Shown here: one piece after another, positions 19,631 to 61,714 of the stretch
Numbering within the stretch: position 1 is the first letter of the stretch
Layout: each line of letters opens with the position of its first letter
Assembly: GCA_035084275.1 (NCBI GenBank)
Contig: CM068756.1
Location: 14,880,001-14,944,000 of the forward strand
Direction of reading: 5' to 3'
Origin: Hydrolagus colliei
Lineage: Eukaryota
Length of the DNA: 64,000 nt
Notes under the pieces: model-generated
Databases searched by the model: none
Seen by the model: only the letters and a program-made list of their open reading frames with translations
What the model was told of the DNA's origin: nothing
Position numbers and translations under genes: made by a program

Positions 19631-20324
19631 TTCCAGAATTTCGCCGGATGTGAGATACACTATATTAGTGAGACCCTACGAGAAGACAATTCGCCATTTG
19701 CTCACATGGCTGGAGAGCCAACTTTGTCTATTAGTTGTTGAGAACTCGTTTCTCTAACACTTGGGATCATTATCGTTGCTTTTCTCTCCTTCCTCCTGAA
19801 CTGGCTTCAGGGAATCTCCTAAGTTACCGTGACCAAAACTCTCCCCATCCCACTAGTCCTTGTCAGACTCCACTGGCTCCCTGTCACAAATTACACTCGT
19901 CTACAAAACACTGCCTGCCCTCCTTTCCAATGGCGTCAGCTCAGTTTTCATGAACTCCACCCTGACGCTGTGGAAGGCTCTCCCTGGTTCTCCCCACATT
20001 ACCCCCACTCCTTCCCCATTTTCATGTGATGATGGAAAATCTTCAATTTTGAGCGTACTTTCTGTCACCTTTCCCCCACCCCCGTCACAGAGCGACAGGC
20101 ACCGCTACTGTTCAGCTCTCGGAGAGTCTCAACCGTGTGAAGGACGCTGTATACATGTTGTTGTTTCATTCTATAATGGTATGAGCGAATGCTTCATTTT
20201 AGTCTTCAATTTAAATGTTTAAAAAAATCTTTCATGTCGACAAATGTCAATGAAACCAACCATTTGTAACTAGAAGAGAAGTCATTAAATAGTTCTCAAG
20301 AAAATCAGGCTGACATTGACATAG

Positions 20325-22414
20325 CCAAGTGAGAGCAGTTGAACGCACCTGGCTCAAATCTGGCCTCACGGTCCACCGGCAAATCTGGCTGGACCGCATC
20401 AAATTTTACCGCTCCGCCCTAGCCACCGCCAAATCAGCCTTCTACTCCAGGATAATCCTGGAAGCGAAGGACAACCACTGCCTCCTCTTCGCCACCACCA
20501 AACAGCTCCTCCGCCCCCCCCCCCCCCCCCCCCACCTCACCTCGCAGATCCTCTCCTCAAACGTTCGTTGTGAGGAGATGCTGGACTTCCTCGAGTCCAA
20601 AATTGAGAAAATCCGCTCTGCGGTTTTCTCCCCCCACCACTCCTCCACCTCCGCGCCCTCATCAGTTACTTCAACCCCTACTCACCCCCCATTTCACACT
20701 TTCAACCCCACCACCCCGCTTTCAATCACAAAAACAATCACCTCCATGAAACCCACCACAAGCTCATTGGACCCCATCCCCACCCACATCCTCCGCACCC
20801 AGCTCCATTTGTTAGCCCCGCTCATTTCTGACACCATTAACCTTTCCCTCTCCTCAGGAACCGTCCCTACCTCCCTTAAAACAGCCACCATCACCCCTAT
20901 CCTGAAGAAACCCTCCCTTGATGCGTCGCAACCATCAAGTTATCGACCCATCTCCAACCTCCCGTTTCTATCCAAGGTCCTTGAAAGAGTGGTTGCCTCC
21001 CAGCTCCGCTCTTTCCTTTCAAATCACTCACTTCTTGAACCCCTCCAATCAGGTTTCCGCCCTATCCACAGCACAGAAACTGCCCTGGTTAAGGTCACAA
21101 ATGACATCCTAACCGCCTGTGACCAGGGCTCCCTCTGCCTCCTCGTCCTCCTTGACCTGTCTGCTGCGTTCGACACAGTCGACCACACCATCCTCCTTCA
21201 ACGTCTTTCCTCCCACCTCAACCTTCAAGGCACAATCCTTGCTGGTTCCATTCTTATTTGACCCACCGTTTACATTTTGTTTCTTCCAATGGTTTTTCTT
21301 CAAACCCCCGCACAGTTTCCCACGGCGTTCCTCAGGGCTGTGTTTTAGGCCCTCTCCTTTTCATCCTTTACACGCTCCCTCTGGGTGACGTCATCCGCAG
21401 ACATGGGATAAATTTCCACATGTATGCGGATGACACCCAGTTGTACCTTTCTGCCTCATCCCTCAACCCCCAGATGATCGATGTTCTGACAGCATGTCTG
21501 TCCGACATCGAGTCGTGGACAGGGGACAACATTTTGCAATTGAAAGTGAATAAGACCGAGGCCCTGCTGATTGGCTCAAGCCAGCGCCTCCGCACATCGG
21601 GCGCTGCCAGCCTCAATATCCAAGGCTGCACTCTCCACCTCACAAAGCCAATCAGGGACCTCGGCATCATGTTCGATCAAAAACTTTCCTTCCTCCCCCA
21701 CATCTGCGCCTTGACCGGCACCGCCTATTTCCATCTGCGCAACATTGCCAGGCTCCGTAATTAGCTTACCCCCCACGCTGCCGAAACACTTGTGCACGCT
21801 TACATCACCTCACGGCTGGACTACGGAAATTCTCTCCTCGTCGGCCTCCCCAGTTCCTCCATTCATAGGCTGCAGGCCATCCAAAACTCTGCAGCCCGTG
21901 TACTATCCCGCACCCGCCTCCGCGACCACATAACCCCCACCCTCGCCCGTCTCCACTGGCTCCCCATCCTCCAGAGGATCGAGTTTAAGATCCTCGTGCT
22001 CACCTACAAGGCCTTATACGGCCTTTCCCCATCCTACTTAACCGATCTACTCTCCCCCTACACGCCCACCCGGACCCTCCGTTCAACAGGACTTGGCCTG
22101 CTCCAAGCCCCCCGCCCGAACCGCCCCACCATCGGAGGCCGGGCCTTCAGTTTCTCCGCTCCCACCTTATGGAATGCCATCCCTCAATCCCTTCGTTTCG
22201 TCTCTTCCCTTTCCTCTTTCAAGGCCGGTTTGAAGACTTTCCTCTTCGATCGTGCCTTTTGTTCCACCCCGAACTCTTTTACCTCCCCTTCGTGTTTCAC
22301 CCCTTCCCAAACACTCCCCTCCCAGCTCAGGTCACACGCCTCCTGTTCAGCGCCTTGGGACGTCCTCCCGATGTGAAAGGCGCTCTATAAATGTAAATTG
22401 TTGTTGTTGTTGTT
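20325..22414 (+). mobile_element. L2-clade LINE, 5'-truncated, RT region with one frameshift and one stop
   Basis: [50 protein letters not shown]; frameshift ~21243, TAG at 21762; (gtt)n tail. Confidence 0.95.
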
Positions 22415-22689
22415 GATGGTGAAGCTCCCAGCTCAAAGCGTTTAATGCAACATGTGCCCGAGTCCATTACATTTGACTGATTCCAGAACAGAAGGTTCCG
22501 TGGATTCCATGGATTTGATTTCCAATTGATGTAAAAATCTGTGCATGAGATATTGTTTTGAATGACAATGTTCAATCAGCTTGAAAATACATTCGATAAC
22601 TTATCAGCAATGCGTTTTAAGTCTCTTCCGTTTCGCAAAGACACTCGGTCAAAAGGACCAGTACTTAGTGTCAGCTTGTCTCAGCATTC

Positions 22690-24099: not shown

Positions 24100-24815
24100 A
24101 CAACAACAACAACAACTTCAATTTATATAGCTCCCTCCACACTGGACGGCATCTCAGAGCGCTTCACAATAGCAGATCCCAGGACTGATCCTGGGGCAGG
24201 GGTAGAAAGGTAACCAAAGGCACAGTCGAAGAGAAAGGTCTTCAGCTGGGAACTGAAACTGAGAAAGGAGGCGGCGAGACAAAAGTAGTGAGGAAGGGAA
24301 TTCCAGAGCATCGGGGCATAGTGGCTGAAGGCCCAGCCGCCAAGGGTGGAGCAGAGGATTCGGGGGACATGGAGGAGGCCAGACCCAGTGGAGCGAAGGC
24401 AATGGGAGCTGGTTTGAAAAGAGAAGAGGTCAGAGAGGTAGGGGGGTGCAGAGGAGTGGAAGGATTTAAAAACATGGGTGAGGATCTTGAAGTCGATCCT
24501 CTTGGGGATAGGGAGCCAATGAAGTCTGGTAAGGACTGGGGTAATGGGGGAGTGAGGTTTGGTGCAGGTGAGTATGTGGGCGGCAGAGTTTTGGATGAGT
24601 TGGATTTTATGGATTGTGGTGGAGGGGAGACCGGTGAGGAGGGCATTGAAATAGTCCAGCCGTGAGGTGACGAAGGCATGGACCAAGGTTTCAGCGGCTT
24701 TTTGGGGTGAGATATTGCCAGAGACGAGCGATCCATTGGAGGGTGGAAGAAGGCGGTGCTGTGAGGGACTGGATGTGGGGGAGGAAGGACAGTTGGGGGT
24801 CAAACCTGATGCCAA
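24100..24815 (-). mobile_element. L2 3' fragment
   Basis: ORF 24123-24815: AETLVHAFVTSRLDY, LHWLPIPKRIDFKIL; (caa)n tail. Confidence 0.9.
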
Positions 24816-24869
24816 GGTTGTGCACAGGTTCGGAGAGTTTCAGGGGAGACCGAGAAGGTCTAAACTCCA

Positions 24870-26084: not shown

Positions 26085-26800
26085 AACAACAGCAAAATTA
26101 CATTTGTAGAAAACCTTTCATATCAGAAGGATGTCCCAAGATAATCAACAGTCAGGGTTCGGGACCTGAACGGGAGGGCGGGAGTGGGCAGACAAGAGGG
26201 TAACTGAACACATGATCACACTGGTGGGAGTGATGTGGTCGTGGAGCAGGGTGCGGGTAAGGACACAAGGAGGGTTTTGGGACCATTCTTGATGGAGACA
26301 AGGGAGGGAGCAAGGCAAAGGGATTTGGAGATGGAGTTCCAAAGTGTAGGGCCAGAGGCTGAAGGCCCAGCCACCAATGGTAGGGCAGGTCATGTGAGCA
26401 AAACAAGGAGCAAGCTGGAGCCTACTGAATGGAGGGAGCGGACAGGTTGATAGCAGGTCAGAGAGGTAGGAAGGGCCAAGCTCTTGGTGCACCTTCAAAA
26501 TGAGGACAAGGATTTTGAATATGATCGTCTGAGGAATGGGGAGACAATAGACCTGGGTGAGGGTGGGGATGGTGGCGATGCAGAGCCTGTGAAGGAGAGG
26601 ACATGAGCTGTAGAGTTTTGGATGATCTGCCACTTGTGGAGGGAAAATTTGGGGAGGCCAACAAGGAAGGAGTTGCAGTAGTCAAGCCTAGAGGTGATAA
26701 AGGCATGTGTAAGGGTTTCAGCAGCCAGAGGGTGAGGCAGTGACGGAGACAGGCGATTGTTGCTGAGGTGATGGAAAGCAATGCTCATCATGGAATGAAT
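26085..26800 (-). mobile_element. L2 3' fragment, degraded
   Basis: AETLTHAFITSRLDYCNS in ORF 26495-26791. Confidence 0.8.
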
Positions 26801-27029
26801 ATGGAGAAAAGACAGCTCAGGGACAAATAAGGCAATGTAATTAGTTACATTTAAAAAATGTTATCAGATTAGCACAAAAAAAGTTTTCACAATTCAGTGT
26901 GGTTAAATAGGTGTGGTGAGCAATATTTTCCAAGAATTTGTTTAAAGCATATCATGTAAATATTCAATAAATGCAGTTATGTTTCAAACACATGCAAGGA
27001 CCATTGCAACAACAATAAAAAAAATTATA

Positions 27030-27465
27030 GAGCACTTTTCATGTTGGGAAGACGTCCCAAGGAGCTGAACAATCAGGATGTGACCCAAGCAAGGGAGAGA
27101 GGCAGGGCTGGGGGTGGAGAGGTGGGAGAGAGATAAGAGAGGTGGGAGAAAGTTAGGAGTGAGGCAGAAGGCACGGTAAACAAAAGACGGTCTTGGGGCC
27201 GGCATTGAAGGAAGAGAGGAAGAGAGCAAGACAAAGCGACTGTGGGATGGAGTTCCAGAGTGTGGGAGCAGAGAGGCTGAAAACCCATCCACCAATGGTC
27301 GGGCAGGGGACATGGAGCAGTCCAGAGCCTGCTGAATGTAGGGGGCGGGGAGCTTCATATGGGGACAGCAATTCGGAGAGGTGGTGGGGGTGGGGGGATG
27401 CAAGGCCATGAATGGCTTTGAAGGTGAGAATGAGGATATTGAATTTGATCCTCTGGGGGATCAAT
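27030..27465 (-). mobile_element. L2 3' fragment
   Basis: IPQRIKFNILILTFKAIHGL...APTLWNSIP in ORF 27153-27464. Confidence 0.8.
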
Positions 27466-33663: not shown

Positions 33664-33984
33664 CATCCAATCCTGTGTTGGGTTCAGAAACGGTGCAACT
33701 GGCAACCTCTGGATTCGTAAGGCTGACATGAGATGCCAGACAGTTATAAACAACCCCACTCTCTAAAGGCTGAGTCTCTTCCATAGAGCTGGAAACGTTG
33801 TGAAGCCCATTTGAATTATTGTTTTTCCGGAAATTAATCCCAGTTTTAATTTCATTCCCATTTTTAAACCACGTGGGCGTTATATCCCCCGGGAAAAACG
33901 CAACAGTTTCACACACAAGAGTCAGAGAATTTGATGAATCTCTTTCAGGATTTCTGGTGAATATCTTCAGCGGAGTCGGGGGCA
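33664..33984 (-). pseudogene. R3 C1-set exon; donor destroyed, no upstream V or leader
   Basis: ctgtcctccag|TG; LVCETVAFFPGDITPTWFKNGNE...YNCLASH; 321 nt like R2. Confidence 0.9.
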
Positions 33985-35359
33985 CTGGAGGACAGAGAAA
34001 GGAGCAGAATCGTGTTACTTCTAATCAGTTGAAATATAAAACGTTATTCTAATTTGAATTGTATAATAATTATTTGCTTGGAACATTATAATCTGGTTTG
34101 TAATGCCACGAATGTGATTTTTCAGTTTTAAAAGTGTTGATGTCCTTTGTTGGGAACGATGTGTTCAGTTTAGGAGATAACGTCGCCTTGGGGGGACTAA
34201 AGGGGGTACATCATGTTAATATTGTGGCTCTCAGAAATGATGTGGAACCCTTCTTATCACATGAATATTGTGAAGGTGTGAAATCCAGTCGCACGAGTGG
34301 CCATAGATTCAGAATTAAGTGGAATATTTTAAAGGAAGACAGTACAGTTGTAAAGAATGTGGAGATCGGTGAAGAAATTTGAGTAAACGTTCTGCCACCA
34401 TTCCAGAGCGACAACAACCCACATTTATATATCGCCTTCGGGTAGGAAAGTAACGTTAGATGCAGATTTGAATAGAGATTTCGCCATCAATAGAGAAATA
34501 AGTAAAATATCCCAACATTCTCACCAACATTAATATCCCTCTACTGTATTTCTATAACATTTCAACTAATTTACAAGAGGTACAGCAGGTTTCTTCGAAA
34601 CCGTTTTCTGGCTGTTTGTGGGATATTGTTGTGGGTGGGTGAACTGTTCCGGTTTTGTAAAATGTTAACTTCTGCCTTGAATATTAATAATAATAATCCT
34701 TGCAGTTGATATATCATCGCTGATATACATTTACTTTAGAACCACTTAATGGCGTCACTTCTCACTGCCGATGATGTAAGTTGTTCACAGTTATCTCTCT
34801 GAAAGTTGCTCTCTGCAATTCATTTGAAGACTCGGTTCAAACCTGCACTGATACCGTTATGCAGTGAGACAACAATCATTTGAGTTCTGCAGCGCCCTTC
34901 ACAAGGATTGGGTAAAAGCGTGGCCACCGATGTAGGAAATGAGAGGACATGAAACACACCGGAGCCGGGAGCCAATGAGCGGTGGCTGCGGGTAGCGGGG
35001 GGTGAGCTGGGCGGGGAGGTGGGGACTGACATGCAGGGTTAGTACAACAACAACAAAGAACACCTTTCACGTCAGGAGGACGAGGATCTTGATGTCGATC
35101 CGTTGTGTCCTAAGTATCCAGTGGAGCCTGGCAAGGGTTGGTGGGAGGGTGAGAAGCTTTGGTCACCTCTACATGGGGGCTGCCCAAGAGCCAGTCAAGG
35201 GGGAGAAGAGAAAAGCAACGAGACCGATCCCAAGTGTTCGACGAACAATCTGTCAACAAAGAATGGATAACCTGGGCTCGTATTTTTGTGAAAAGACTAC
35301 GTGTTCAGCTCTCCTACAGTCTCAATAATACAGTAATCTTCACGCACAAAGAAAGTCTG

Positions 35360-35507
35360 GAAACATGTTATCAAATCAGAGGGGGAGCCCAGCTGCGCCC
35401 ACAGGGTCAGGAAGTCAAACATCACCCACACATCTCATCTCAATCAACTCCAACCCCTGGTCACAGACCAGCCACAGCTTTAGGGTTAGTCTCAGTCACA
35501 GATCAGG
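35360..35507 (+). promoter_or_regulatory. R4 proximal promoter/5'UTR
   Basis: TTATCA (GATA), CAGCTG E-box at 35390, CAGGAAGT ETS at 35408; shared with the other copies. Confidence 0.6.
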
Positions 35508-35565
35508 ATGTTGGCGAGTGTTGTGTTTCAGTGTCTGTCTCTCACAGTGTGGATCATTTCTAAAG
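35508..35565 (+). CDS. R4 exon 1: signal peptide
   Basis: MLASVVFQCLSLTVWIISK G|GTTGGT. Confidence 0.9.
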
Positions 35566-35664
35566 GTTGGTGACTATTCACTATCCCAGTGATCTCAAAC
35601 ACAAAGTGTGTGTCTCTGTCACAGTATTTTGTTTCAAAACAATGTTTGACTTTATTTCTGACAG

Positions 35665-35943
35665 TTGCTGACGGTACATTGATCACAGTAACACAACAAC
35701 CCGAACAGATCACTGTCAACAGAGGTGAAGATGTGACGTTAACCTGCACCATCTCTAGCACAGCGAACGTGAAAATGCACTGGTGGAAACAGGGAGAGAA
35801 AACATTTGATGTCGAATTTTCTGGAAGGGCCGTCTTCAAACTCCACGATGCAGGTCTCCAGGACTCTGGGATCTATTACTGTTCAGTGGCATTTAACGGA
35901 AGTAAAACAGTGAATGGAACTGGATGCCGTTTAACTGTATGTG
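35665..35943 (+). CDS. R4 exon 2: VJ-type V domain with a 9-aa in-frame deletion
   Basis: 279 nt; VTLTC, HWW, DSGIYYC, NGTGCRLTVC. Confidence 0.95.
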
Positions 35944-36336
35944 GTAAGTGACATGCCAAGGCAGAGATAGTAACTTTATATTTAGTGGAACCATAATTTA
36001 CATTTATGTGAGGCTTCTCGCTGTTGGGGAGGTTCTGAAAGGCTTTACAAAGGCTGAGGAGCAACCAGAGCTGACACTGAGCTGGGAGGGGAGAGTTGAG
36101 GAACGTCTTCAGGTGGGATTTCAGAGGAGAGAGGGGAGGGAGAGAAGGATGGATTTTGATAAAGAATTCTGGAAGTTTGGGGCTGTGTGGTTCAACTTTG
36201 CCCTGTACATGAACATTTCCAAAAGTTGGGGTGACACAAAATAATGGCCGCAATATTCAAATTAAGGTGCAACTAGAAATGTATATTAATTAACCATTAA
36301 TTCTATGGTTTTCTATTCTATTCTACTGTTTTCCGC

Positions 36337-36575
36337 GGAGTCTTGTAGAGCCGTGGTTAGAGCACTCACCTTACAAGCGTGAGACCGGTATTCGAATCCA
36401 GCCAGGTCAGGGCGAAACCTTCGGCAAGTTTCCTGACTCCACACGGCTAATATTGAACAACAACAAAGTCGTCCGCAAATATACAGTTAATTTACTTTAC
36501 AGCATATTCTGTGAGGCGCTTTGAGATATCTAGAAGTTATGAAAAGCGCTATATCATGGATTAACATTATTATTG
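36337..36575 (+). mobile_element. tRNA-derived SINE (duplicated at 44821-45100 plus 47006-47035)
   Basis: gtggttagagcactcaccttacaagcg...attcgaatcc; family tail. Confidence 0.85.
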
Positions 36576-36866
36576 TTAGTTAAACTCTACATTTTATGTT
36601 TCCTGTAAACTTGGAAATTCTGCCTCTTATATCAGAAATAAGATTACATTTCTTTGTCAATTTATTATGGGTTAGTGGGAGTCGCCTTGAACAATTACAC
36701 TGATAACTAGCCAGCTCCTCGTTCACTTTATAGCTGTAGAGACATTTCTTTGTGCAAAATTGCCTGCCGTGTATACCCACAGATAAAGGCAATAAACTTC
36801 ATAGTATATCCTGCCAAGAGATTTCAGATTTGATCAGACTTGATATCAAAGATTTTTCTATTCCAG

Positions 36867-37178
36867 TGCCCCCAATTCCTCTGAATATTTCGTCCAAATC
36901 TCCTCCAAGAGATTCATCTGTGTTTCTGACCCTCGTGTGTGAAACGGCAGCGTTTTACCCGGAGAATCTCACCTTCACATGGTCTAAAAACGGCACCGAA
37001 ATTACAACCGGGATAATCAGCACTGAATGGCAGAACCCGGAGGGATTGTATGAAGCTTCCAGCTCAGTGGAGGAGACACAGCCTGTCCAGAATGGGACAG
37101 TTTATACCTGTCAGGTGTCTCACATCAGCCTCCAGACTCCAGCAATTGGCAACTACACGGTTCAGTTTCTTCCTCAAG
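36867..37178 (+). CDS. R4 exon 3: C1-set domain
   Basis: ctattccag|TG...CAA G|GTAGGT, 312 nt; LVCETAAFYPENLTFTWSKNG...YTCQVSH. Confidence 0.95.
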
Positions 37179-38876
37179 GTAGGTATACAACAGTTTCAGT
37201 GTTAGTTAGTGTTAGCCGCCTTTCACAGGAACATTTCCTTTTTTTTAATTCACACTGAGAACTATACTCATATAATTTGCTTCATGTAAAATCTAAATCA
37301 CATTCATCTTTAGTGGAGTAAACTTGAATTGTTTTTACTCCAAGATTATATCACTTGCTCTTGAAAATATCAACAGTTCAGATTTCAAACGTGTAATATC
37401 CAATATATTGTACACTGCAGAGCGAGTATGAAATGTAAATTTACATCCCATTTCTCAATGACGAGTTGTTATTCTGTCCCCTCTATTTCACCTCATGATC
37501 TGTGTTGAATGGCGCTATAATATTAAATTATTTTCACAAAATCATTGGTTCGGAGTCTCTTTACAATGATGATTGTGTGAGGACCTCAGCTCCATGATTC
37601 CTGTGGAGCCGCGGCTGAGACTGGAAGGTAACACCGCCGATGGTGATTTCCAGATGATTTCACCTTTCCATGGCTCAGCACATTGGCACATTTTGACCCG
37701 AATTCACAATCTAGCTGCACTTGGGAACTGTTAATAAATGTTTTCTCTCTACAGCTGTCTTTCTCAGAAATAACCACGATAACTACCGCCGATTTTGTTG
37801 CTGGTAATAAATATATTCACACTCAACATATTGCGTTAAAAAACACATCTCTATCCAGTTTCCGACAAAGCACTTTGAAACGCTTGCATTGTATAATGCG
37901 CCATATCTAATTCAAGGTTTACTATTTATTTTATTACTATTGCCGAGAAGTTTCATTGCGTCTCTACAACATAATGTACTTGCTCTCTCATTTCGCTTAC
38001 TATCAAATAAAATTATGCGAATACCTTATTGTGAATGGTATATACATATATACATATATTCATCAACATAATCCATCAGGACGCAGGAAACAAGTTACAT
38101 GAAACATCCCAGGGTCTATTTTTATTTATTGTTCTTATGTAGAAAAACACGCCAACGTCATTGTTCCTCAAACACTTGTTTCGGGATAATTGTGTGGTTA
38201 TTGAAACTTTAAGCCATTCGATCACAATAAGCAGTTTCACCTCTGAATTCCCGGTTTCCAAGCCAACAATCCCCAGTGATGATTTTGTTAGAAACTCAGT
38301 TCTATGATTGCTCAGAAGCCGCAGCTGAGACTGGAAGATAACACTGCGGGTGATGGTTCCCAGAATACCATGTTTCGCCTTATGATGGAGCATTTTGTCC
38401 CAGTGCTTACAGTTTGGCTGCAGTCGGGCGCTGGATGGCTACAAGCTGTTGTTATTGTTGTAACTTTTGTTGCCCCCCTACCCTCTCTCCCCCTCCTTTC
38501 TGTCCTCGCACTCTTTCCCACTTTCTCTCCCCTCTTTTCCTCCCATCTTTGCCTCTCTACCCCCTGTTTACTTCCCTCTTTCTTTCCACACCTTTGACTT
38601 CCTTCACCCATACCCCCCTTCCCCCCCTTTTCCTCCCTTACCTTACCCCACACCACGATTGTTTGTGGGACTCCGTTGTGCCGAATTTGATGCCGTGTTT
38701 CGCCCACAAATGTACAATCAATTCTCCTACTGTCTATCCATCATTATCCATGTGCAAATGCTGTTGTGCATTAAATGCTAACTGGTCTCGCTTCCCCAGT
38801 CTAGTTTATTTCGTGACAACATTTCAGTTAAACACAAGCAGCGAACAGCACTGATGATTCTATCTTTGCTCCCTAG

Positions 38877-38988
38877 TGTTTAAAGGACTCGGTTTCATCG
38901 AAATGTGTCGGTTAGGATTCAGCGGGTTGATAATATTACTCCTGGCCGTCATCATTGTGGACTATTTCGATATTAATCCTCTGTAAAG
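38877..38988 (+). CDS. R4 exon 4: TM with Arg (activating type), stop at 38984-38986
   Basis: tctttgctccctag|VFKGLGFIEMCRLGFSGLIILLLAVIIVDYFDINPL* then AG|GTAAGA. Absent from the ORF track. Confidence 0.85.
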
Positions 38989-39652
38989 GTAAGATATTAA
39001 TTCGTTTGGGAGGCCGCCGACCTGAACTTTTAAATCCTGGCTGAGTGCAGAGTAACTGAGCAATCAAAACTGAGTTGTTCAAACCTATTGAGGCTGCGCC
39101 TTAGAAAGTGAAAATGGAGAAATTGTCCTTGGCGTTCAAGCAATCATTCATGCCTGGTAGATGACCTGAAAATACACAGAAGTAACTTTTTTATTACAGT
39201 AATTGATTGACAGTAACATGAATGTTTCGTTTTTGTACTTGCGATATTTTCACGTATATTCGCGACCCCACAACCTTTAAATATCAGATCACTATTTGAT
39301 TGGCATGACTTTGAACACATTATAATAGCTGTGTCAGATGAAGCGTCAACGCAGATGATAACTGATATTTTTCTTCAATGTTCTGATCAATTAATGACTG
39401 ATTGTCATTTCTTGCCTTTCTGATTGCTGAGTTTCCAATCAATCTGATTTGACAATCATCTAACAAAATTTTCTCATAACGTTTTGAAAAATAGTTTTTT
39501 CTTTCCAGATATTGTTGGTTTCTAATATATTCTATATAGGGAACAAATGGTGCCGAAAACAGTGATTAATGCTGAAACTCCAAATGTAGCGGAATCCAAG
39601 GAATGGGATCCGCGCTGATGGTCGAGGTGGGAAGCGGGTTGGAGCGAAAGAT

Positions 39653-39669
39653 AGGGTTAGGGTTAGGGT
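39653..39669 (+). repeat. Short interstitial telomeric repeat AGGGTTAGGGTTAGGGT
   Basis: Absent at the paralogous site ~1580. Confidence 0.6.
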
Positions 39670-41394
39670 AAGGCAACTTTACCGAAGGCAACTTTACTCA
39701 GCAATTTTGTATGAAATGTATGAATTCATAAAACCAAAATGCTAATAATGATTCCGTTGTTATAGGAGCAAACGATGAGACATCATTGACTGCAGAAATG
39801 TGAAGAATCGGAAGAGAATCATGAATAGACGCATATTATTTTGTAGATTTCTTGTGGCTATACGATGCAAGGTAACTGCCGCTTGAATTCAATATACTAC
39901 ATTTGCAGATTTAAAAAATAGGACAGGCTTTGCAGAAATGTAAGCGTTTCCCTTATAATTATGAACTTTGTACTTCAATTACTTTAGGAAACAGGTTAAA
40001 AATATTTCACGCAATCTCGAGCGGTTAGTATGTCTTTTAATTAGTGTTTTTAGTTGTTTTATCATGTTTCTTGTAGAATATTTAACGGATTATTTCTCCT
40101 ATTAAAGCCACTACCATACTGTACACAATTACCCGAAAATCACATTAAACTAACAGCATCTGTAAATTCAGCGCCTTGTGACCTCCCCCCGACGTGAAAG
40201 GCACTCTACAAATGTAATTTTGTTGTTGTTGTTGTTGTTGTTCTAAACTTTTACCAGAGAATTGTTCAATTAAAAATGTGCTTTACATGAAAACTGTAAT
40301 TAAAAATAATAAAAACATTACTTTGCAACATTTTAATGGCAAAATTTCACTGCAGAAAACGCGCGTTTCCTCCTTTATCCACTTTGACTCTTCCGAATGA
40401 TGGCGGAACACGTGTTATGGGAAACCGCCTTTAAGAAATAGACGCAATTAAGGTTCTAATGTTTAACATTGATTATATAGTCAGCAAAGGTGGAGTGATC
40501 ATAACTGTGAGAGAGAAACAACACTCCATCGGAAAAACAGACTGTGTCATAGTCCAACATGTTGTGAAATGATGAACCATTGCGCGTCTAACACCTTGTG
40601 TAACGTCAAAGAATCACAACAATCTATGTTTACAAATAGTGACTCTCACTTCAAGACTGATTCACAAACCACCTCCTACAGTAAACACCGGGATCTGGAT
40701 TAGGAGCTGGGGAGGTGGCTCTTGTCATGGTCGGTTTTGAAATCAATCCGTGGCCAGAGGTGGGGGGGGGGGGATGGGGGGGGGGGATCCCGACTGAAGT
40801 TTCAAACAGAAGCGAAAGATTGTCTGAAAGTTCTCCCATCTCCCGGGTTATGGTGGATCTGTCACTGGGACATGGGATACTTAAGTATCTGCCAAGCGAA
40901 TGCAGTAGAGTGATAGTGAAGCTATGGTTCCCGAATTCGGCGCCTAGGACGTCTCTGGGAAGTCAGTGAAATCAGGATTGAGCTGTTCAGATTCTAGACC
41001 GGGAGCAAGGTCTGCAGCTGGTGTAGAGACACTTAGAATCTCATGAGTAGGGAACTGAAATGATCACGGCTGATGGATTGGTTACATCTGATGAATGCTT
41101 CAGGATAAGGACAGCCGAGGGGGCGGCAGTGATTAATTCAGGTGATGTTGTGAATGTGCAGGAAACCTGAACGATTGACAGCCAGGAAGGATAGTTAATG
41201 TTTTGGGATCAGGCGATGACTGGGATGATTGACTTTCCAGTTTCCAATGCTGGTTTGAAATCTGGTTTTCAAGGATTATGTGATGGTTACAAAAAAACTT
41301 TGGATTCGAAGCAAAAGTTCAAGGTTAAAGTGGCAGTATTGCCACTTGTAATTATTGTGTGTTGTCTGGACACTTTACATTGTGTTATTTGAAG

Positions 41395-41660
41395 TGCAAC
41401 CCTGTAGCTCAGTGGTGAGAGCAGTCGCCTTACAAGACCTGGGTTCAATTACTGGCCGGGTGCCACCTTCAGTAAGTTTCCTTATTCCACACACCCAATA
41501 ATAATTCCTCAACAAAAGCTATTTTTAAAATTGGCCAGTTCAATCCACAACTGGTTTGGGGACATTCTCTGGGAAATCGGCTGCCGCGTTTCGCTCACAT
41601 ATTTACATACAGTCAACTAGCTTGACAATAAACGTTGTCTTCGCTTTGAGACCTCGTTGA
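41395..41660 (+). mobile_element. tRNA-derived SINE
   Basis: tgtagctcagtggtgagagcagtcgccttacaag head, ggctgccgcgtttc core. Confidence 0.85.
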
Positions 41661-42469
41661 GGCGCCTCCCCACACTCTGGAACTCCATCCCACATTCGCT
41701 TTGCCTTGATTCCTCCCTTGCCTCCTTCAAAGCCGGTATCTAGACCCTATTCTTCGTTCGTCCCTTCTGCCGCCCTCCCAACTCCATCCCTTCCCTCTTA
41801 ACTCTCTCCCTCCTTCCCCCTTATCCTGCTTGACCCATTGCTTGACTCCTCACTGCCTTCAGACGCCCTCCCTCCGACGTGAAAGCAGCTCTATAAGTGT
41901 AATATATTGTTGTTGTTGTCCAAAACACGTGAAAAGTGCTATTTAAATGCAATGATTTGTATTGATGATTAAGTGCTTTGTGACGCCTACCGCATGTAAC
42001 AGGAGATATTTCAAATATAAAGAATATTTTATTTCATGTTGTACAGTGCACTGCAATACTAGCCCAGTCTATCAGTTTGATTGTGATCCCTGTTCGGAAA
42101 CTGCTATCTGTTGCTTCAGCGACAATTGTGCTATAAACTGGACTGGAATTACATTTAAACCACACTTCTAGTCTGTGTTTATTACACTGTTATCACAATG
42201 CTCTCCCCGTCCGATCGAATTGCTTCTATTCTGCACTGAACACTCCACCTGGACGTGGTCACTTTTATATAAGTTGCCGACATCACAGAGTTATTCATTA
42301 GAACTATACAGTGCGGGTTCCTCTCGTCAAATTATTTCGACGTCAAATCTAGATATTGTCATGGTGAACCACTCCTGTCTTTCAATTCAATAAACAAACC
42401 GCGGAGGGAGCCAAAACTTTAATACAGTTTCAGCAGCAAATAGGTTTGGGTATTGCATCAATTCTTTCC

Positions 42470-42830
42470 ATCGCCTGCTTGTCAATAGCAATAAAGATGA
42501 TCACAATCCCCCCTTTTGCTGAATGTCTTATCACATTTTGAAATGCAGTGAAAGCGTTTCTCAGTGTTTTACTGCAGTACTGACGGTTTACAGGAGGTGA
42601 ATACAGCAGCCACCCCAGCACAACAATGTACCACAATCAGACATTAAATAGATGACCACATTTACCAAGGAAAGTTTGGCCTCGACACCAACAGTAAATA
42701 TCTTTTGTTTTCCAGTTGAGATGTAGGATATTTTACACGCTGTTGAACAGACAAACCCGACCTGGGGTATGAGTTTCACTCGAAGATAGCACACCCCCAT
42801 TTGGTAAGGTTCTCAAACTACTCTTGTGAA
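42470..42830 (-). mobile_element. Old DeuSINE-like element
   Basis: Minus strand ggggtgtgctatcttcgagtgaaac...ggctgctgtattc; related to 22690 and 55700. Confidence 0.55.
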
Positions 42831-43819
42831 GATTGAACGCATAAACCACTCACACAGTGGCCAGGATACTGAGACAAGCTGACGCTTATTGCTCATCCTC
42901 GCATTTGCCCTGGAGCCGTTATGAAATGAAAACGTCTTAAGGCCCATTGCTATTAAGCTACTGGCTATGATCGTGCGCGATATGGCAGAGAAAAGGCACA
43001 ATCGAATCAACAGTATACTTTTATTTGAAGGTTGGGTGCATAGATTTTGACATTAGTTGGAAAGTAATCCCAAATTACACAGATACAGGAGACGCTCTGT
43101 TGTGGAAGCAGCCGCATGTTGTGCAATCCGGCACATTGTGCATTACAGCGTCTAGACAATGTCAGGAACATTTACTTTAGAAACACTTGATGACATAACT
43201 ACAGATGATGTAAGTTGTTCACAGTTATCTCTCTGAAAGTTGCTCTCTGCAATTCATTTGAAGACTCGGTTCAAACCTGCACTGATACCGTTAAGCAGTG
43301 AAACAACCATCATTTGAGTTCTGCAGCGCCCTTCATAAGGATTGGGTAAAAGCGTGGCCACCGATGTAGGAAATGAGAGGACATGAAACACACCGGAGCC
43401 GGGAGCCAATGAGCAGTGGCTGCGGGTAGCGGGGGGTGAGCTGGGCGGGGAGGTTGTGACGGATAGTCAGGACATGCAGGCAGGACATGTTGTTAGTACA
43501 ACAACAACAACAACGAACAACTTTCACGTCAGGAGGACGAGGATCTTGAAGTCGATCCGTTGTGTCCTAAGTATCCAGTGGAGCCTGGCAAGGGTTGGTG
43601 GGAGGGTGAGAAGCTTTGGTCACCTCTACATGGGGGCTGCCCGAGAGCCAGTCAAGGGGGAGAAGAGAAAAGCAACGACACCGATCCCCAGTGTTAGAGA
43701 AACGAGTTCTCAGCAACTAATAGACAAGGTTGGCTCTCCAGTCTTGTGAGCAAATGGCGAATTGTCTTCACACAGGGTCTCACTAATATAGTGTAGCTCA
43801 CATCCGGCGAAAGTCTGAA

Positions 43820-43965
43820 AACATGTTATCAAATCAGAGGGGGAGCCCAGCTGCGCCCACAGGGTCAGGAAGTCAAACATGACACTCACATCTCATTTAA
43901 ATCAACTCCAACCCCTGGTCACAGACCAGCCACAGCTTTAGGGTTAGTCTCAGTCACAGATCAGG
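43820..43965 (+). promoter_or_regulatory. R5 proximal promoter/5'UTR
   Basis: Same GATA, E-box and ETS block as R4. Confidence 0.6.
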
Positions 43966-44023
43966 ATGTTGGCGAGTGTTGTGTTTCAGTGTCTGTCTCT
44001 CACAGTGTGGATCATTTCTAAAG
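43966..44023 (+). CDS. R5 exon 1: signal peptide
   Basis: Identical 58-nt leader, G|GTTTGT. Confidence 0.9.
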
Positions 44024-44122
44024 GTTTGTGACTATTCACTATCCCAGTGATCTCAAACACAAAGTGTGTGTCTCTGTCACAGTATTTTGTTTCAAAACAA
44101 TGTTTGACTTTATTTCTGACAG

Positions 44123-44428
44123 TTGCTGACGGTACATTGATCACAGTAACACAACAACCCGAACAGATCACTGTCAACAGAGGTGAAGATGTGACGTTAA
44201 CCTGCAACATCTCTAGCACAGCGAACGTGAAAATACACTGGTGGAAACAGGGAGAAAGTCAATACATGGTAATGGATCACAAGAAAACATTTGATGTCGA
44301 ATTTTCTGGAAGGGCCGTCTTCAAACTCCACGATGCAGGTCTCCAGGACTCTGGGATCTATTACTCTTCAGTGGCATTTAACGGAAATAAAACAGTGAAT
44401 GGAACTGGATCCCGTGTAACTGTATGTG
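44123..44428 (+). CDS. R5 exon 2: VJ-type V domain lacking the second canonical Cys (YYS)
   Basis: 306 nt; TAT TAC TCT where R4 has TAT TAC TGT; NGTGSRVTVC. Confidence 0.95.
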
Positions 44429-45100
44429 GTAAGTGACATGCCAAGGCAGAGATAGTAACTTTATATTTAGTGGAACCATAATTTACATTTATATGAGGCT
44501 TCTCACTGTTAGGGAGGATCTTAAAGGCTTTACAAAGGCTGAGGAGCAGCCAGAGCTGACACTGAGCTCGAAGGGGAGAGTTGAGGAACGTCTTCAGGTG
44601 GGATTTCAGGGGAGAGAGGGGAGCGAGAGAAGGATGGATTTTGATAAAGAATTCTGGAAGTTTGGGGCAACGTGGTTCAACTTTGCCCTGTACATGAACA
44701 TTCCCAAAAGTTGGGGTGACACAAAATAATGGCCGCAATATTCAAATTAAGGTGCAACTAGAAATGTATATTAATTAACCATTAATTCTATGGTTTTCTA
44801 TTCTATTCTACTGTTTTCCGCGGAGTCTTGTAGCGCCGTGGTTAGAGCACTCACCTTACAAGCGTGAGACCGGTATTCGAATCCAGCCAGGTCAGGGCGA
44901 AACCTTCGGCAACTTTCCTGACTCCACACGGCTAATATTGAACAACAACAAAGTCGGTCAATTCAATCCATGACAGTTTGTGGGACACTGACTGCTGTGT
45001 GCAATTGGCTGCTGCGTTTTGTCGCCAATATACAGTTAATTTACTTTACAGCATATTCTGTGAGGCGCTTTGAGATATGTAGAAGATATGAAAAGCGCTA

Positions 45101-47005
45101 GATTCATAGATTCATAGATTCATAGAATTTTACGGCACAAAAGGAGGCCATTCGGCCCATCTAGTCTGTGCCGGCTCTTTGAAAAGAGCGATTCAATCCC
45201 ACTGCCCTGCCCGCTCCCCATAGCCTAATAGACCTGTTCTCCCTAAATAAAGATCTAATTCCCTTTTAAAAGTTGTTATCGAATCAGCCTCCACCACCTT
45301 TTCAGGCAATGCATTCCAGATTCGAACAACTCGCTGAGTGAACAAATTTCTCCTCAGCTCCCCTCTACTGCGCCTTGAAACTATTTTAAATCTGTGACCA
45401 CGAGTCACAGATTCACCCACGAGTGGAAATAGTTTTTCTCTATTTACCCTGTCGAAACCCCTCATGATCTTATAAACCTCTATTAGGTCTCCCCTCAATC
45501 TTCTCTGCTCCAGAGAGAATAACCCTAGCCTATCTAGCCTCTCCTCATAGCTGAAGTCCCTCAATCCTGGCACCATCCTAGTAAATCTTCGTTGTACCCT
45601 TTCCAATGCCTTCACATCCTTTCTGTAGTGTGGTGACCAGAATTGAACACAGTATTCCAGCTGAGGCCTCACCAAAGTCCTATAGAGGTTAGTCAGCACT
45701 TCCTGACTTTTGTACTCTATACCCCTATTTACAAAGCCTAGTATCCCATATGCCTTCTTAACAGCCTTGTCTACCTGTCCTGCCACCTTCAACGAGTCAC
45801 TAACACAAATCCCCAGGTCTCTCTGTTCCTTTACACCATTTAAAATTGTACTATCTAGCCTATATTGCCTCCCTTCATTCCTTCTCCCAAAATGCATCAC
45901 CTCACACTTCTCTGCATTAAACTTCATCTGCCATGTGTCTGCCCACTTTACCAATTTGTCTATATCCTCTTGCAGATGGCTACTATCCTCCTCACTGTTT
46001 ACTATTCTCCCTAACTTAGTGTCATCTGCAAACTTGGAAACTGTACTCCGTACACCCAAGTCCAGATCAATGATGTAGATTACAAACAGCAATGGTCCCA
46101 AAACTGATCCCTGTGGCACACCACTGCTCACTTCCCTCCAATCTGAAAAACAGCCGCTCACTACAACTCTCTGCTTTCTGTCTCGCAGCCAGTTGTGGAT
46201 CCACGCTGCCACTGTCCCTTTTACGCCATGGGCCTTTAATTTCATAATAAGTCTCTCATGTGGCACTTTGTCAAATGCCTTTTGAAAGTCCATGTAAACT
46301 ACATCAACTGCGCTACCATTATCCACCCATTCCGTTACCTCATCAAAAAATTCTATCAGATTTGTAAGGCAAGATTTGCCTTTAACAAATCCATGTTGAC
46401 TGTCCTTTATTAGCCTATATCTTTCTAAGTGAAGATCTACCTTGTCCCTGATTATGGACTCTAGAAGTGTGCCCACTACCGACGTTAGACTGACTGGTCT
46501 GTAGTTACCAGGCTTGTCCTTCTGCCCCTTTTTATACAAGGGAGTAACATTAGCTATCCTCCAGTCCTCTGGCATGACCCCTGTGTCCAAGGAAGATTGA
46601 AAGATCGTGGCCAGAGTCCCTGCTATTTGCTCCCGTGCCTCACTTAGTAACCTAGGGTGCATCCCATCCGGACCAGGTGACTTATCCACCTTGAGCGACG
46701 TCAACCTTTTTAGAACTTCCTCTCTGGTTATAATTATTCTATCCATTTCTCCTACCCTCTCCTCTAATACCATGGCATTGGCTGTATCATTTTCTTTTGT
46801 GAAGACAGAGGCGAAGTACTCATTCAGTACATCAGCCATGCCCTCTGCCTCCACAATGAGATATATAAACTGCACCTACTTCCCCCTCTGCACCTAATTC
46901 CCACTCTCACCCAATTCCTTCTCACTCTGTCCTTGCCTCACTCCATCCGTAGCTCACTCTGGCTCTCTGCTCGATTAAGGCTCTCGCAGCTAGATATTAA
47001 TCCAA
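45101..47005 (-). mobile_element. Young CR1 insertion with an uninterrupted 560-codon RT/C-terminal ORF plus a 143-bp unrelated 5' segment
   Basis: ORF 45193-46875 with FADD; (ttctatga/atctatga)n tail; empty site gcgcta|tatcatgg at 36545-36558 in R4. Confidence 0.95.
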
Positions 47006-47321
47006 TATCATGGATTAACATTATTATTGTTAGTTAAACTCTACATTTTATGTTTCCTGTAAACTTGGGAATTCTGCCTCTTATATCAGAAATAAGATTA
47101 CATTTCTTTGTCAAGTTATTATGGGTTAGTGGGAGTCGCCTTGAACAATTACACTGATAACTAGCCAGCTCCCCCTTCACTTTATAGCTGTAGAGACATT
47201 TATTTGCGCAAAATTGCTTGCAGTGTAATACCCACCGATACAGGCAATAAACTTCATAGTATATCCTGCCAGGAGATTTCAGACTTGATCAGACTTGATA
47301 TCAAGGATTTTTCTATTCCAG

Positions 47322-47633
47322 TGCCCCCAATTCCTCTTAATATTTCGTCCAAATCTCCTCCAAGAGATTCATCTGTGTTTCTGACCCTCGTGTGTGAAAC
47401 GGCCGCGTTTTACCCGGAGAATCTCACCTTCACATGGTCTAAAGACAGCACCGAAATTACAACCGGGATAATCAGCACTGAATGGCAGAACCCGGAGGGA
47501 CTGTATGAAGCTTCCAGCTCAGTGGAGGAGACACAGCCTGTCCGGAATGGGACAGTTTATACCTGTCAGGTGTCTCACCTCAGCCTCCAGACTCCAGCAA
47601 TTGGCAACTACACGGTTCAGCTTCCTCCTCAAG
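47322..47633 (+). CDS. R5 exon 3: C1-set domain
   Basis: 312 nt, 6 aa different from the R4 C1; same splice sites. Confidence 0.95.
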
Positions 47634-48259
47634 GTAGGTATACAACAGTTTCAGTGTTAGTTAGTGTTAGCCGCCTTTCACAGGAACATTTCCTTTTTTA
47701 AATTCACACTGCGAACTATACTCATATAATTTGCTTCATGTAAAAAATAAATCGCTTTCACCTTTAATGATGAACATTTTAATTGTTGTGAATGCAAAAT
47801 AATATCACGTACCCTTGAAATGTTAGCACTGCATGTTTCAAACGTTTGACATCCAAAATGTTGTTTCCAGCAATGCAAGTATTAAATGTTTACTGTAAAA
47901 TGCTGTGAATGCGTATTTTGGGGGAAAACGGCGGCCATTGTCTACACAGCTAATTAATGCTCGAGCATCACAGAGAAAGCCAACAGTTTGATTTGGGGGA
48001 TTGTTGACCTGGAAACCGGGGATTCAGACATGAAACTGCACACTGTATTGTGATCCAATGGATTAAAGTTTCAATAACCACACAATTCTCCAGAAGCAAG
48101 TGTTTTAGGTCAAACCACGTTGCCGCCTTTTTCTATATAAGAACGATAAATAAAAATATATCCTGGGCTGTTTCATGTGACATATACTTTGTACTTTGAG
48201 ACGCCTTGACGACATGATATAATGTTGTATCAAACACGTAATTATGATCTTATCTATAG

Positions 48260-48364
48260 TGAAAAAGCATCACTTATTACTGATCGTTGGATCTGCAGCT
48301 GGCCTGGCTTTTCTGGTGCTGTTGGTGTACATTGGCTTACGATCTAAGGGAAAGAAAACGAAAG
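48260..48364 (+). CDS. R5 exon 4: uncharged TM (inhibitory type)
   Basis: tatctatag|VKKHHLLLIVGSAAGLAFLVLLVYIGLRSKGKKTK G|GTAAGA. Confidence 0.9.
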
Positions 48365-48517: not shown

Positions 48518-48561
48518 GTTTACACAAGAAACAGAATGATTCGGACCACCGTAGCGAACAG
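48518..48561 (+). CDS. R5 exon 5: 44-nt linker
   Basis: attttag|GLHKKQNDSDHRSEQ|GTAATA, phase 1 to 0. Confidence 0.8.
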
Positions 48562-48793: not shown

Positions 48794-48904
48794 GCAATGC
48801 AAGGAGGAGGTGATGAGATTGTGACATACATCACACTGGATTTGAAAAGTTTCAGTAAATTGTCAACACCTAAACATCGTGAAGATAGCACAGTTTACGC
48901 CAAG
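48794..48904 (+). CDS. R5 exon 6: ITIM VTYITL plus TVYAK(I)
   Basis: tttacag|AMQGGGDEIVTYITLDLKSFSKLSTPKHREDSTVYAK|GTAAAT, 111 nt. Confidence 0.85.
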
Positions 48905-49968: not shown

Positions 49969-50085
49969 ATCAAGAAAAAGGCGGAAGGTCACAATGAGGT
50001 GTGTGCTGCTTCCGAGTTTTCTGACCCGAACAATGTAGTAAAACCTAAGAGAACTGACCCAAATACAGTATATGCTACAGTGCAG
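49969..50085 (+). CDS. R5 exon 7: first Tyr lost (Y to C), ITSM TVYATV
   Basis: tttcatag|IKKKAEGHNEVCAASEFSDPNNVVKPKRTDPNTVYATVQ|GTGAGA, 117 nt. Confidence 0.85.
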
Positions 50086-58354: not shown

Positions 58355-58500
58355 CTGAAAACATGTTATCAAATCAGAGTGGGAGCCCAGCTGCGGAGCC
58401 CAGGAAGTCAAACATCACTGTCACATCTCATCTCAATCAACTCCAACCCCTGGTCACAGACCAGCCACAGCTTTAAGGTTAGTCTCAGTCACAGATCAGG
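58355..58500 (+). promoter_or_regulatory. R6 proximal promoter/5'UTR
   Basis: Same GATA, E-box and ETS block. Confidence 0.6.
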
Positions 58501-58558
58501 ATGTTGGCGAGTGTTGTGTTTCAGTGTCTGTCTCTCACAGTGTGGATCATTTCTAAAG
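58501..58558 (+). CDS. R6 exon 1: signal peptide
   Basis: Identical 58-nt leader. Confidence 0.9.
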
Positions 58559-58657
58559 GTTTGTGACTATTCACTATCCCAGTGATCTCAAACAGAAAGT
58601 GTGTGTCTCTGTCACAGTATTTTGTTTCAAAACAATGTTTGACTTTATTTCTGACAG

Positions 58658-58963: not shown

Positions 58964-59783
58964 GTAAGTGTCAATACAAATCAGAGATCGTAATTATTAT
59001 ATTTATTCAAATCATAATTTCCATTCGTATAAGGCCTCTCACTGTTGGGAGAGAATCTTAAAAGCGTAGTACAAACTCTGTGGGGCAGCTGGAGCTGAGA
59101 CCTGAGACCAAGATGGGAGGTTAGAGTGACCGAAAGGACATTCAAACAGAAAGTCTTCAGTCGGGATTGGATAGAGGGAAGGGCGAGAAGGATGGAATTC
59201 GATAAGGAATTCTGGAACTTCGGGAAATCATTGCTGAACACTCCCTGCACATGAAAATTCCCTAAAGCTGGGATGACACAAAGCACTGGGCACAATATCC
59301 AAATTAAGGTTTTCTAATGATTTGTCTAATAATTAGTTCTGTGGTTTTATATTCTGTACTTTTAATAAAACCCTGGATTCCACTTGATTTTTCGCCAGTT
59401 TTGTTCACCTGAACATCCCACATTTTCGTATTGATCTGCATTAACCCCAAGACCCTTTTTTCTTCCACTGTTTTAATGATTATCCTTCGGGGTGGGCGGG
59501 GGAGTGGGGGAGTGACTGGGGTCCCCATGGAGCTGAACTGGCTCCAAAGTGACGCGCCTGGCAACCGAATATCGGAATCGAGCCAACAGGTTATTGGGAA
59601 TTGACTTGAACAATTAAACTTACAGGTGGTGACATCATCATTCCCGTTAAATTTCAGAGAGACAATTCTGTGCACAAAATAGCCCACCATGTACGACCAC
59701 AAATACAGACATTATTCTTTATAGTATATCCTGGGAGGGTATTTATTCGTGATAAGACGTTATATCAAAGATTTTTATTGCAG

Positions 59784-61600: not shown

Positions 61601-61714
61601 TGGACAATTATTGGCTGCTACAGACATTACTGACCGCTGGATCTGCAGTGGGGCTGGCTTTTTCAGTGCTTTTGGTGTACATTGTCAAGCGATCCAAATT
61701 AAAGAATATCAAAG
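61601..61714 (+). CDS. R6 exon 4: uncharged TM
   Basis: tatctatag|VDNYWLLQTLLTAGSAVGLAFSVLLVYIVKRSKLKNIK G|GTAAGA. Confidence 0.9.

Follow-up and report, generated by a model that had tools for sequence, protein, structure and literature searches.

A recent mosaic gene with a predicted activating end beside an inhibitory-type neighbour in a V(J)-C1 receptor cluster of Hydrolagus colliei

Introduction

How two neighbouring receptor genes with different signalling ends came to share nearly the same ectodomain is the question raised by a 64,000-nt stretch of the genome of the holocephalan Hydrolagus colliei (assembly GCA_035084275.1, contig CM068756.1, positions 14,880,001 to 14,944,000 of the forward strand; G+C about 41%), which was analysed as a whole and is hereafter called the window. 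Translated searches of the window with the exons of one gene, R4, located six related genes, R1 to R6. R4 belongs to a group of tandemly arranged, non-rearranging V(J)-C1 receptor genes in a chondrichthyan genome. R4 and its neighbour R5 lie on the same strand about 8 kb apart, and their ectodomains are 94% identical in amino acid sequence. A preliminary description of the window had proposed that the ectodomain of the inhibitory R5 was placed on an activating transmembrane (TM) segment in R4 by recent conversion. In the present study, the recent mosaic (3.6% divergence on one side of the junction and about 20-28% on the other) and a TM model with arginine (Arg) were supported, and the activating part of the proposal is a prediction from sequence. 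The best explanation overall, to which a probability of about 0.6 is given, is a conversion-made mosaic R4 with the architecture of an adaptor-dependent 'activating' receptor standing beside an inhibitory R5.

Results

R4 and R5 share a high-identity tract on the plus strand that extends from 34727 to about 37295 in R4 and from 43168 to about 47750 in R5. The tract comprises 5' flank (about 780 bp), the leader exon, the V exon, the V-C1 intron, the C1 exon and about 115-117 bp of the next intron, and on the R5 side it contains a long interspersed nuclear element (LINE) insert at about 45101-47011. In self-comparison it appeared as two pairs of segments, R4 34727-36471 with R5 43168-44956 and R4 36551-37436 with R5 47005-47889. 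The two genes matched at 2325 of 2411 aligned sites (86 mismatches, 96.4% identity), plus a few indels; identity was 98.4% from the leader to the end of V, 96.3% in the V-C1 intron, 97.1% in the C1 exon and 96.6% over the first 117 bp past the C1 donor, and runs of 100-150 bp with 0-2 differences occurred within the tract. The coordinates and pattern of the near-identity reported in the preliminary description were thus reproduced, with two corrections: its level is about 96-97% and not about 99%, and a 150-bp patch of 66% identity had been overlooked. Moreover, the suggestion that only the ligand-binding exons were transferred was not borne out, as the tract also holds the 5' flank, the leader and two introns.

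The 3' edge of the tract was mapped to about 37295, approximately 115 bp past the C1 donor (exon end 37178), in good agreement with the earlier estimate of about 110 bp. Over the next 140 bp R4 and R5 remained homologous at 72% (Fisher p=2e-21 versus the tract), and past 37436/47889 R5 ceased to align with R4. Such a sharp fall of identity within continuing homology is the signature of conversion or crossover. The backbone intron of R4 (37296-38876, plus strand) accordingly has no R5 homology after 37436 and instead resembled the C1-TM intron of R6 at about 75% (72-84%) as far as 38228/61025. Beyond 38228 it contained a local duplication, a CT-rich stretch and a piece of a short interspersed nuclear element (SINE), and it became R1-like from about 38642. 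From there R4 and R1 were colinear to 42510, with 81% identity upstream of the terminal R4 exon (38877-38988), about 80% within it and 75-90% downstream; the 3' flank (38989-42510, plus strand) was colinear with R1 904-8012 at about 75-84%. The exon itself matched only R1 808-903 (66% in amino acids, about 80% in nucleotides). The earlier reading of an R6-like intron and an R1-like TM exon was therefore correct.

Taken together, the promoter-to-C1 block of R4 was 3.6% diverged from R5, and the remaining intron (versus R5 and R6) and the 3' end (versus R1) were about 20-28% diverged, so that the block is approximately ten times less diverged from R5 than the rest of R4 is from its relatives. 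Breakpoint analysis of R4, R5 and R6, proposed earlier as a check, returned a mosaic pattern of sites: R4 grouped with R5 at 398 of 469 informative sites, its string of sites ran from R5-like to R6-like, back to R5-like and then to R6-like or mixed, and the maximum chi-square value was reached in 0 of 2000 shuffles. These comparisons show R4 to be a mosaic in which an R5-like promoter-to-C1 block is joined to older, different 3' sequence.

At its 5' end the tract begins at 34727, within about 10 bp of the limit of homology common to R2, R4 and R5. In R4, this point is preceded by an unrelated stretch of about 300 bp that includes a SINE fragment, and farther upstream by the V-C1 intron of R3. 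The upstream flank of R5 runs into a repeat (42378-43145) that was also found upstream of R2 and R6 and is missing in R4. The divergent patch lies upstream of the leader (35225-35374, plus strand) and differs strongly from the rest of the tract (Fisher p=6e-31); in a four-way alignment R5 was 90-94% like R2 there and R4 was about 78% like R6. In addition, the leader exon and leader intron were 97-100% identical among R4 (35474-35660), R5 (43932-44118) and R6 (58467-58653), far above the V-exon identity of R4 and R5 to R6 (75-87%), and the leader exon is also present in R2 (19485-19429). This likeness suggests that the 5' ends of the clustered genes were homogenised separately or are strongly constrained. 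Together with the R2-like patch in R5, the leader identity among R4, R5 and R6 indicates that small conversions are common in the cluster.

Mobile elements served as further markers. A tRNA-derived SINE occupies the same site of the V-C1 intron in R4 (36337-36580, plus strand) and R5 (44822-45112). The corresponding site in R6 (59355-59589) consists of unique sequence without the SINE, of which many copies occur elsewhere in the window. Since the element is common to R4 and R5 and absent from R6, it indicates common descent of the R4/R5 tract. The R5-only insert of 1.9 kb carries a 560-aa open reading frame (ORF) for an RVT_1 reverse transcriptase (RT) on the minus strand, and it was regarded as an element without long terminal repeats (non-LTR) because it ends in an octamer repeat. 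The preliminary description had called it CR1; its presence in R5 only and its RT-encoding, non-LTR nature were confirmed, and the CR1 name is plausible for what is an unclassified element. R4 shows a clean empty site (GCGCTA/TATCATGG), from which it follows that the LINE was inserted later than the copy event. Two RT-bearing copies in the window (5049-6800 and 45111-46862) were 98.3% identical, in opposite orientation and with the 3' octamer repeat, which indicates a recently active LINE family in this genome.

The gene model of R4 consists of four plus-strand exons with open frames, canonical AG/GT sites and compatible phase 1. The leader exon (35508-35565; MLASVVFQCLSLTVWIISK) begins with ATG, ends at a GT donor of phase 1 and matches the N-terminus of Callorhinchus protein P0007. 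It is followed by a V exon of VJ type (35665-35943, phase 1-1), by a C1-set exon (36867-37178, phase 1-1; Pfam C1-set score 7e-14) and by the predicted TM/tail exon (38877-38988; VFKGLGFIEMCRLGFSGLIILLLAVIIVDYFDINPL). The last exon is preceded by a polypyrimidine tract and an AG acceptor and is phase-compatible with C1; its TAA stop (38984-38986) lies two bases ahead of the GT donor at 38989. The splice coordinates 37178 and 38877 given previously were exactly the predicted exon ends. The spliced model (37178 to 38877) encodes 252 aa comprising the leader, V, C1, a TM segment with Arg and an 8-residue tail, the arrangement predicted for an 'activating' receptor that depends on an adaptor and partners the inhibitory R5. 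The C-terminus of this predicted exon (EMCRLGFSGLIILLLAVIIVDYFDINPL, then the stop) provides a basic TM residue and a short tail without an immunoreceptor tyrosine-based inhibitory motif (ITIM). The Arg sits near the outer end of the TM helix, and the hydropathy of the best 19-mer was similar in the TM segments of R4 (2.54) and R5 (2.62). A remnant TM or ITIM exon of inhibitory type was looked for in R4 (37179-43167) and none was found. The AlphaFold (AF2) model of the R4 ectodomain was a confident immunoglobulin (Ig) sandwich with a mean predicted local distance difference test (pLDDT) score of 87.8 and a dip around a deletion described below; its fold was Ig light-chain-like.

Several features of the R4 3' part stand apart from the gene model. 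The C1-TM intron contains an internal duplication (37564-37730 and 38274-38433, 70%). Its segment 38094-38274 is inverted in R5 (47996-48181), indicating that the much shorter R5 intron was rearranged. Downstream of the terminal exon, a 400-bp block (R4 39244-39650, R1 1156-1575) was about 90% identical, above the identity of the exon itself; a coding exon was sought in this block and no ORF was found, and the block could be a 3' untranslated region, a regulatory element or another conversion patch.

R5 has the exon series of an inhibitory-type receptor on the plus strand: leader (43966-44023), V (44123-44428, with YYC changed to YYS), C1 (47322-47633), an uncharged TM exon (48260-48364; LLLIVGSAAGLAFLVLLVYIGL), a 44-nt mini exon (48518-48561) with a match in a Callorhinchus protein, cytoplasmic exons at 48794-48904 (VTYITL, TVYAK) and 49969-50085 (TVYATV; one tyrosine replaced by cysteine), and further tail exons to about 51352. 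The splice sites were canonical, the TM, mini and ITIM exons were intact, and the tail carries the motifs VTYITL, TVYAKV/TVYATV and TxYxxV, so that R5 has the predicted features of an uncharged-TM inhibitory-type partner with ITIMs or immunoreceptor tyrosine-based switch motifs. In the exon at 49969-50085 the ITIM-like tyrosine has become cysteine (EVCAASEF, compared with QVYASLEF in R6 and QVYATLEF in Callorhinchus P0001). Placed between TM and tail, the mini exon changes the phase from 1 to 0; R6, also on the plus strand and also of inhibitory type, lacks it in the corresponding region (61714-62087) and likewise has no counterpart of the VTYITL exon.

The V exons differ by six substitutions, all six nonsynonymous, and by a 27-bp in-frame deletion in R4 relative to R5, R6, R2 and all database relatives (junction 35797/35798, with GA..GA microhomology), exactly as previously claimed. 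In C1, nine substitutions were counted where six had been reported, namely six nonsynonymous (six amino acid changes) and three synonymous. Four of the six V differences were derived in R5 relative to R6 and two in R4, and R4 gained a cysteine. With nine residues of the C' region lost from R4, the canonical V-domain cysteine lost from R5 and 12 of the 15 changes nonsynonymous, continued binding of one and the same ligand by both receptors is unsupported. The 27-bp deletion makes R4- and R5-specific reads distinguishable.

The other genes of the cluster are less complete. R1 (plus strand) enters the window only with its last exon, 808-903. R2 (minus strand) has a leader (19485-19429), V (about 19267-18962) and C1 (about 18380-18084); the region downstream of C1 (8000-18083, minus strand) yielded neither a TM exon nor a cytoplasmic exon of either type, and its 3' end could yield a secreted, divergent or truncated product. 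R3 (minus strand) is of inhibitory type, with C1 (33985-33689), an uncharged TM exon (32652-32563) and ITIM-type exons (30469-28349), one of which (29889-29767) contains a stop. Its leader and V exons are missing, and its C1 exon with the remnant of the V-C1 intron (33689-34403, minus strand) is arranged head-to-head with R4; roughly 300 bp, including the SINE fragment, separate it from the tract edge.

Pfam searches matched Ig/V-set and C1-set domains in the window genes. No protein identical to any window protein was found in the database searches; the closest proteins were from Callorhinchus milii (55-80% identity), followed by shark, skate and ray. Several of these relatives have uncharged TM segments and ITIM-rich tails and are automatically named 'tyrosine-protein phosphatase non-receptor type substrate 1-like', that is, SIRP-alpha-like, and the label 'SIRP-like' for the family derives only from this automatic annotation. 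Upstream of R2 (20323-22415) a G+C-rich repeat of 2.1 kb is inserted that shows a strongly negative GC skew; an unrelated locus of Callorhinchus milii (L001 16906-19033) contains a sequence matching it at 76%, and pieces related to it lie at 24217-24819 and 26273-27461. Tandem-repeat and tRNA scans gave nothing further than tRNA-like SINE heads.

Discussion

The recent mosaic structure of R4 is well supported, and it was probably made by ectopic gene conversion. The favoured mechanism would be a non-reciprocal ectopic transfer that homogenised about 2.6 kb of R4 with its ITIM-bearing neighbour R5, running from the edge of the family-wide 5' homology through the leader, V and C1 exons and ending about 115 bp inside the next intron. 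The remainder of R4 would be old paralogous sequence with an R6-like intron and an R1-like terminal exon. Thereafter the copies would have diverged at an approximately neutral rate, R4 losing nine residues of the C' region and gaining a cysteine, and R5 losing a canonical cysteine and gaining the intron LINE and the R2-like promoter patch. Non-reciprocal conversion is favoured because a simple unequal crossover would duplicate the R5 upstream region, which was not seen.

Several observations weigh against this reading. The tract ends on its 5' side at the homology limit, where no diverged homologous flank is present, and since this edge lies beside the truncated R3, a duplication or deletion junction is equally possible there. 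The direction of transfer, as judged from the flanks and from distances to R6, was not decisive. R4 is a candidate gene known from genomic sequence alone, and the evidence on its terminal exon is mixed. The R1 counterpart of this exon (808-903, plus strand; 5' end about 495-504) is broken 11 nt past the acceptor by an antisense tRNA-derived SINE (505-807), and a 2-bp indel between R1 and R4 moves the stop, so that R1 stays in frame into the GT donor. The motif FIEMxR is conserved between the two exons, and their differences (proportions pN 0.16 at nonsynonymous and pS 0.27 at synonymous sites over 32 codons) speak for weak constraint at best. No real homologue of the C-terminal 42 residues of R4 was found among 5.8 billion proteins, nor of the 35-aa product of the TM exon among 1.84 billion representatives, a weak negative because a query of 35 aa detects close relatives only. 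The single match to the TM exon, P0017, was rejected as the artefact of a low-complexity repeat protein. In the Callorhinchus locus L001, around the relative P0013, no R4-type TM exon was found, and only SINEs and the 2.1-kb repeat were common to both loci.

These points bear most directly on the view that R4, and perhaps R5, is decaying or unexpressed, in which case the mosaic would be real and the 'activating receptor' a functionless by-product of cluster turnover. We consider this doubtful, and of the competing accounts it survives best. Comparison of R4 with R5 gives a ratio of nonsynonymous to synonymous rates (dN/dS) of about 1 (of the 15 coding changes, 12 are nonsynonymous and 3 synonymous), and both V domains carry lesions that are unique among 13 relatives, namely the loss of nine C'-region residues in R4 and of the canonical second cysteine in R5, which may fit relaxed constraint as well as diversification. 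One ITIM of R5 has lost its tyrosine, the TM exon is absent from the protein libraries, and the cluster is rich in pseudogenes, including the SINE-broken R1 copy and the truncated R3. However, the frames of all four R4 exons are still open and their splice sites canonical, and the deletion is in frame and leaves a confident Ig sandwich in the AF2 model. Moreover, dN/dS is also about 1 for R4 and R5 versus R6, at dS of about 0.12-0.25, with about 200 codons free of stops, and open frames at such a ratio may reflect the fast evolution of immune receptors rather than decay. A test for positive selection was not significant, the 12 nonsynonymous and 3 synonymous changes not differing from neutrality.

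If conversion did occur, its direction could have been the reverse, with R5 receiving the block from R4, and we regard this as rather unlikely. The tract itself has no polarising feature and both copies are derived relative to R6 in V; furthermore, the R2-like patch demonstrates that R5 has been a conversion recipient. The R5 flank repeat (42378-43145), shared with R2 and R6 and not with R4, shows a rearrangement of the R4 flank only and does not give the direction. In the KIR, Ly49 and CEACAM families it is generally the activating members that are derived, and this general knowledge argues for transfer from R5 to R4.

A third account is less probable still. It holds that R4 is a hybrid made by duplication and deletion or by unequal crossing-over, in which a duplicated 5' half from an inhibitory, R5-like gene became joined within the C1-TM intron to an activating gene's 3' half, and no R4 ectodomain existed beforehand to be converted. 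The edge at 34727 is indeed a non-homologous junction near the intron of R3, a gene that lost its leader and V exons, and activating KIR genes of macaques are thought to have arisen by such recombination (PMC8102735). However, the 3' boundary lies inside sequence that remains homologous to R5, at 72%, for 140 bp more; the absence of the R5 upstream region (42378-43145) from R4 requires an extra deletion; and 34727 is within about 10 bp of the R2/R5 homology edge, where conversion would stop anyway. Finally, a divergent haplotype of the R5 5' half mis-joined at the R4 position by the assembly is very improbable, for even if 100-150 bp runs with 0-2 differences could mislead short-read assemblers and immune clusters can hold highly divergent haplotypes, this would require two independent misjoins between copies set apart by 86 substitutions, by several indels and by both the 1.9-kb LINE and the 150-bp patch, the 3' junction is a gradual decay of identity in unique sequence without a repeat edge, and runs of N are absent from the window.

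A conversion-made R4 beside R5 therefore remains the reading adopted here. As predicted from sequence, the two genes match a paired-receptor architecture, in which an ITIM-bearing partner stands beside one with a putative Arg-TM and a short tail. Splicing to the Arg-TM exon, pairing with an adaptor and an activating function are what we infer for R4. The pathogen-decoy rationale would be taken over for R4 and R5 from other families. It is a familiar mode of paired-receptor evolution, here found in the R4/R5 pair of a cartilaginous fish: in mammals, birds, frogs and teleosts alike, activating members have repeatedly borrowed the binding domain of their inhibitory partner. An unambiguous case from a chimaera that can be dated would push the mechanism to the base of the jawed vertebrates, in an uncharacterised V-C1 family whose domains are related to those of antigen receptors. 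We put forward, tentatively, that this holocephalan V(J)-C1 family runs an inhibitory/activating pair that is kept in register by conversion and then diversifies quickly. If this were true, an arms race of conversion followed by diversification would already be present in the first-split living lineage of jawed vertebrates, and in a gene type structurally adjacent to antigen receptors. The R4 case alters no concept; its value is comparative and hinges on expression of the predicted gene. The locus also offers an experimental handle, namely one predicted splice junction, a candidate Arg-TM for adaptor pairing, and two ectodomains that differ at 12 residues and by a 9-residue deletion.

Comparison with known receptor systems

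Among receptors of cartilaginous fish, the skate MDIR genes form a multigene family of the Ig superfamily with activating and inhibitory receptors (PMC3031540). Their V domains are CD300/TREM/pIgR-like, whereas the window genes are V-C1, and no conversion mosaic is cited for them (PMC3031540). The best solved-structure matches of the window genes, both in sequence and in fold, were UrIg2 and Ig light chains, with shark UrIg2 (9dmx) as the best PDB sequence match (1e-16). Like these, the window genes have a single VJ exon, a GTGxxLTV J-like motif, a split leader and a C1-set domain (PMC12227049). However, UrIg2 has many C domains, and a pairing of ITIM and charged TM is not described for it (PMC12227049), whereas in the window genes TM and signalling exons come after a single C1. 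With one C1 only, they fall outside UrIg/UrIg2, and the likeness is at the level of domains (PMC12227049).

SIRP-alpha and SIRP-beta, after which the relatives are annotated, resemble the window genes in having an N-terminal V followed by a C1-set domain. They also resemble R4 and R5 in that several tyrosine motifs lie in the cytoplasmic part of the inhibitory member and the activating member combines a charged TM with a short tail. SIRP-beta uses lysine with DAP12, in contrast to the Arg near the outer end of the R4 helix. SIRP proteins are V-C1-C1, whereas one C1 exon lies between V and TM in R4, R5 and R6; given this single C1, the genes were not assigned to the SIRP family, which is defined by V-C1-C1 structure and orthology to SIRPA/SIRPB. 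No SIRP chain was among the top 60 PDB sequence matches or the top 50 fold matches, and both by sequence and by fold the V(J)-C1 family lies nearer to UrIg2 and Ig light chains than to any SIRP of solved structure.

The activating KIR of macaques (KIR3DS/KIR3DH) are recombinants whose TM contains an Arg and which pair with FcR-gamma (PMC8102735). Like R4, they join an inhibitory-type ectodomain to the Arg-bearing TM and tail of another gene (PMC8102735). The KIR family is unrelated and has C2-type domains. Adaptor pairing was shown by experiment for the macaque receptors and is a prediction for R4; compared with the recombination in macaques, the R4 junction resembles the end of a conversion tract and not a simple crossover.

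The closest parallel in mode is provided by the CEACAM family, in which the paired receptors CEACAM3/CEACAM1 of human and ceacam301/303 and 350/351 of Xenopus were homogenised by gene conversion (PMC5112662). The R4/R5 tract differs in being long (2.6 kb with promoter, leader, two Ig exons and introns) and not a single N-domain exon, in the same orientation of the two genes, in belonging to a V-C1 family, and in the predicted activating end of R4, which is an Arg-TM with a short tail and not a tail resembling an immunoreceptor tyrosine-based activation motif. As in R4 and R5, an ITIM gene is linked to a non-ITIM gene, the ligand-binding region has been recently homogenised and the flanks are much less similar; moreover, nonsynonymous changes build up after homogenisation in both systems (PMC5112662).

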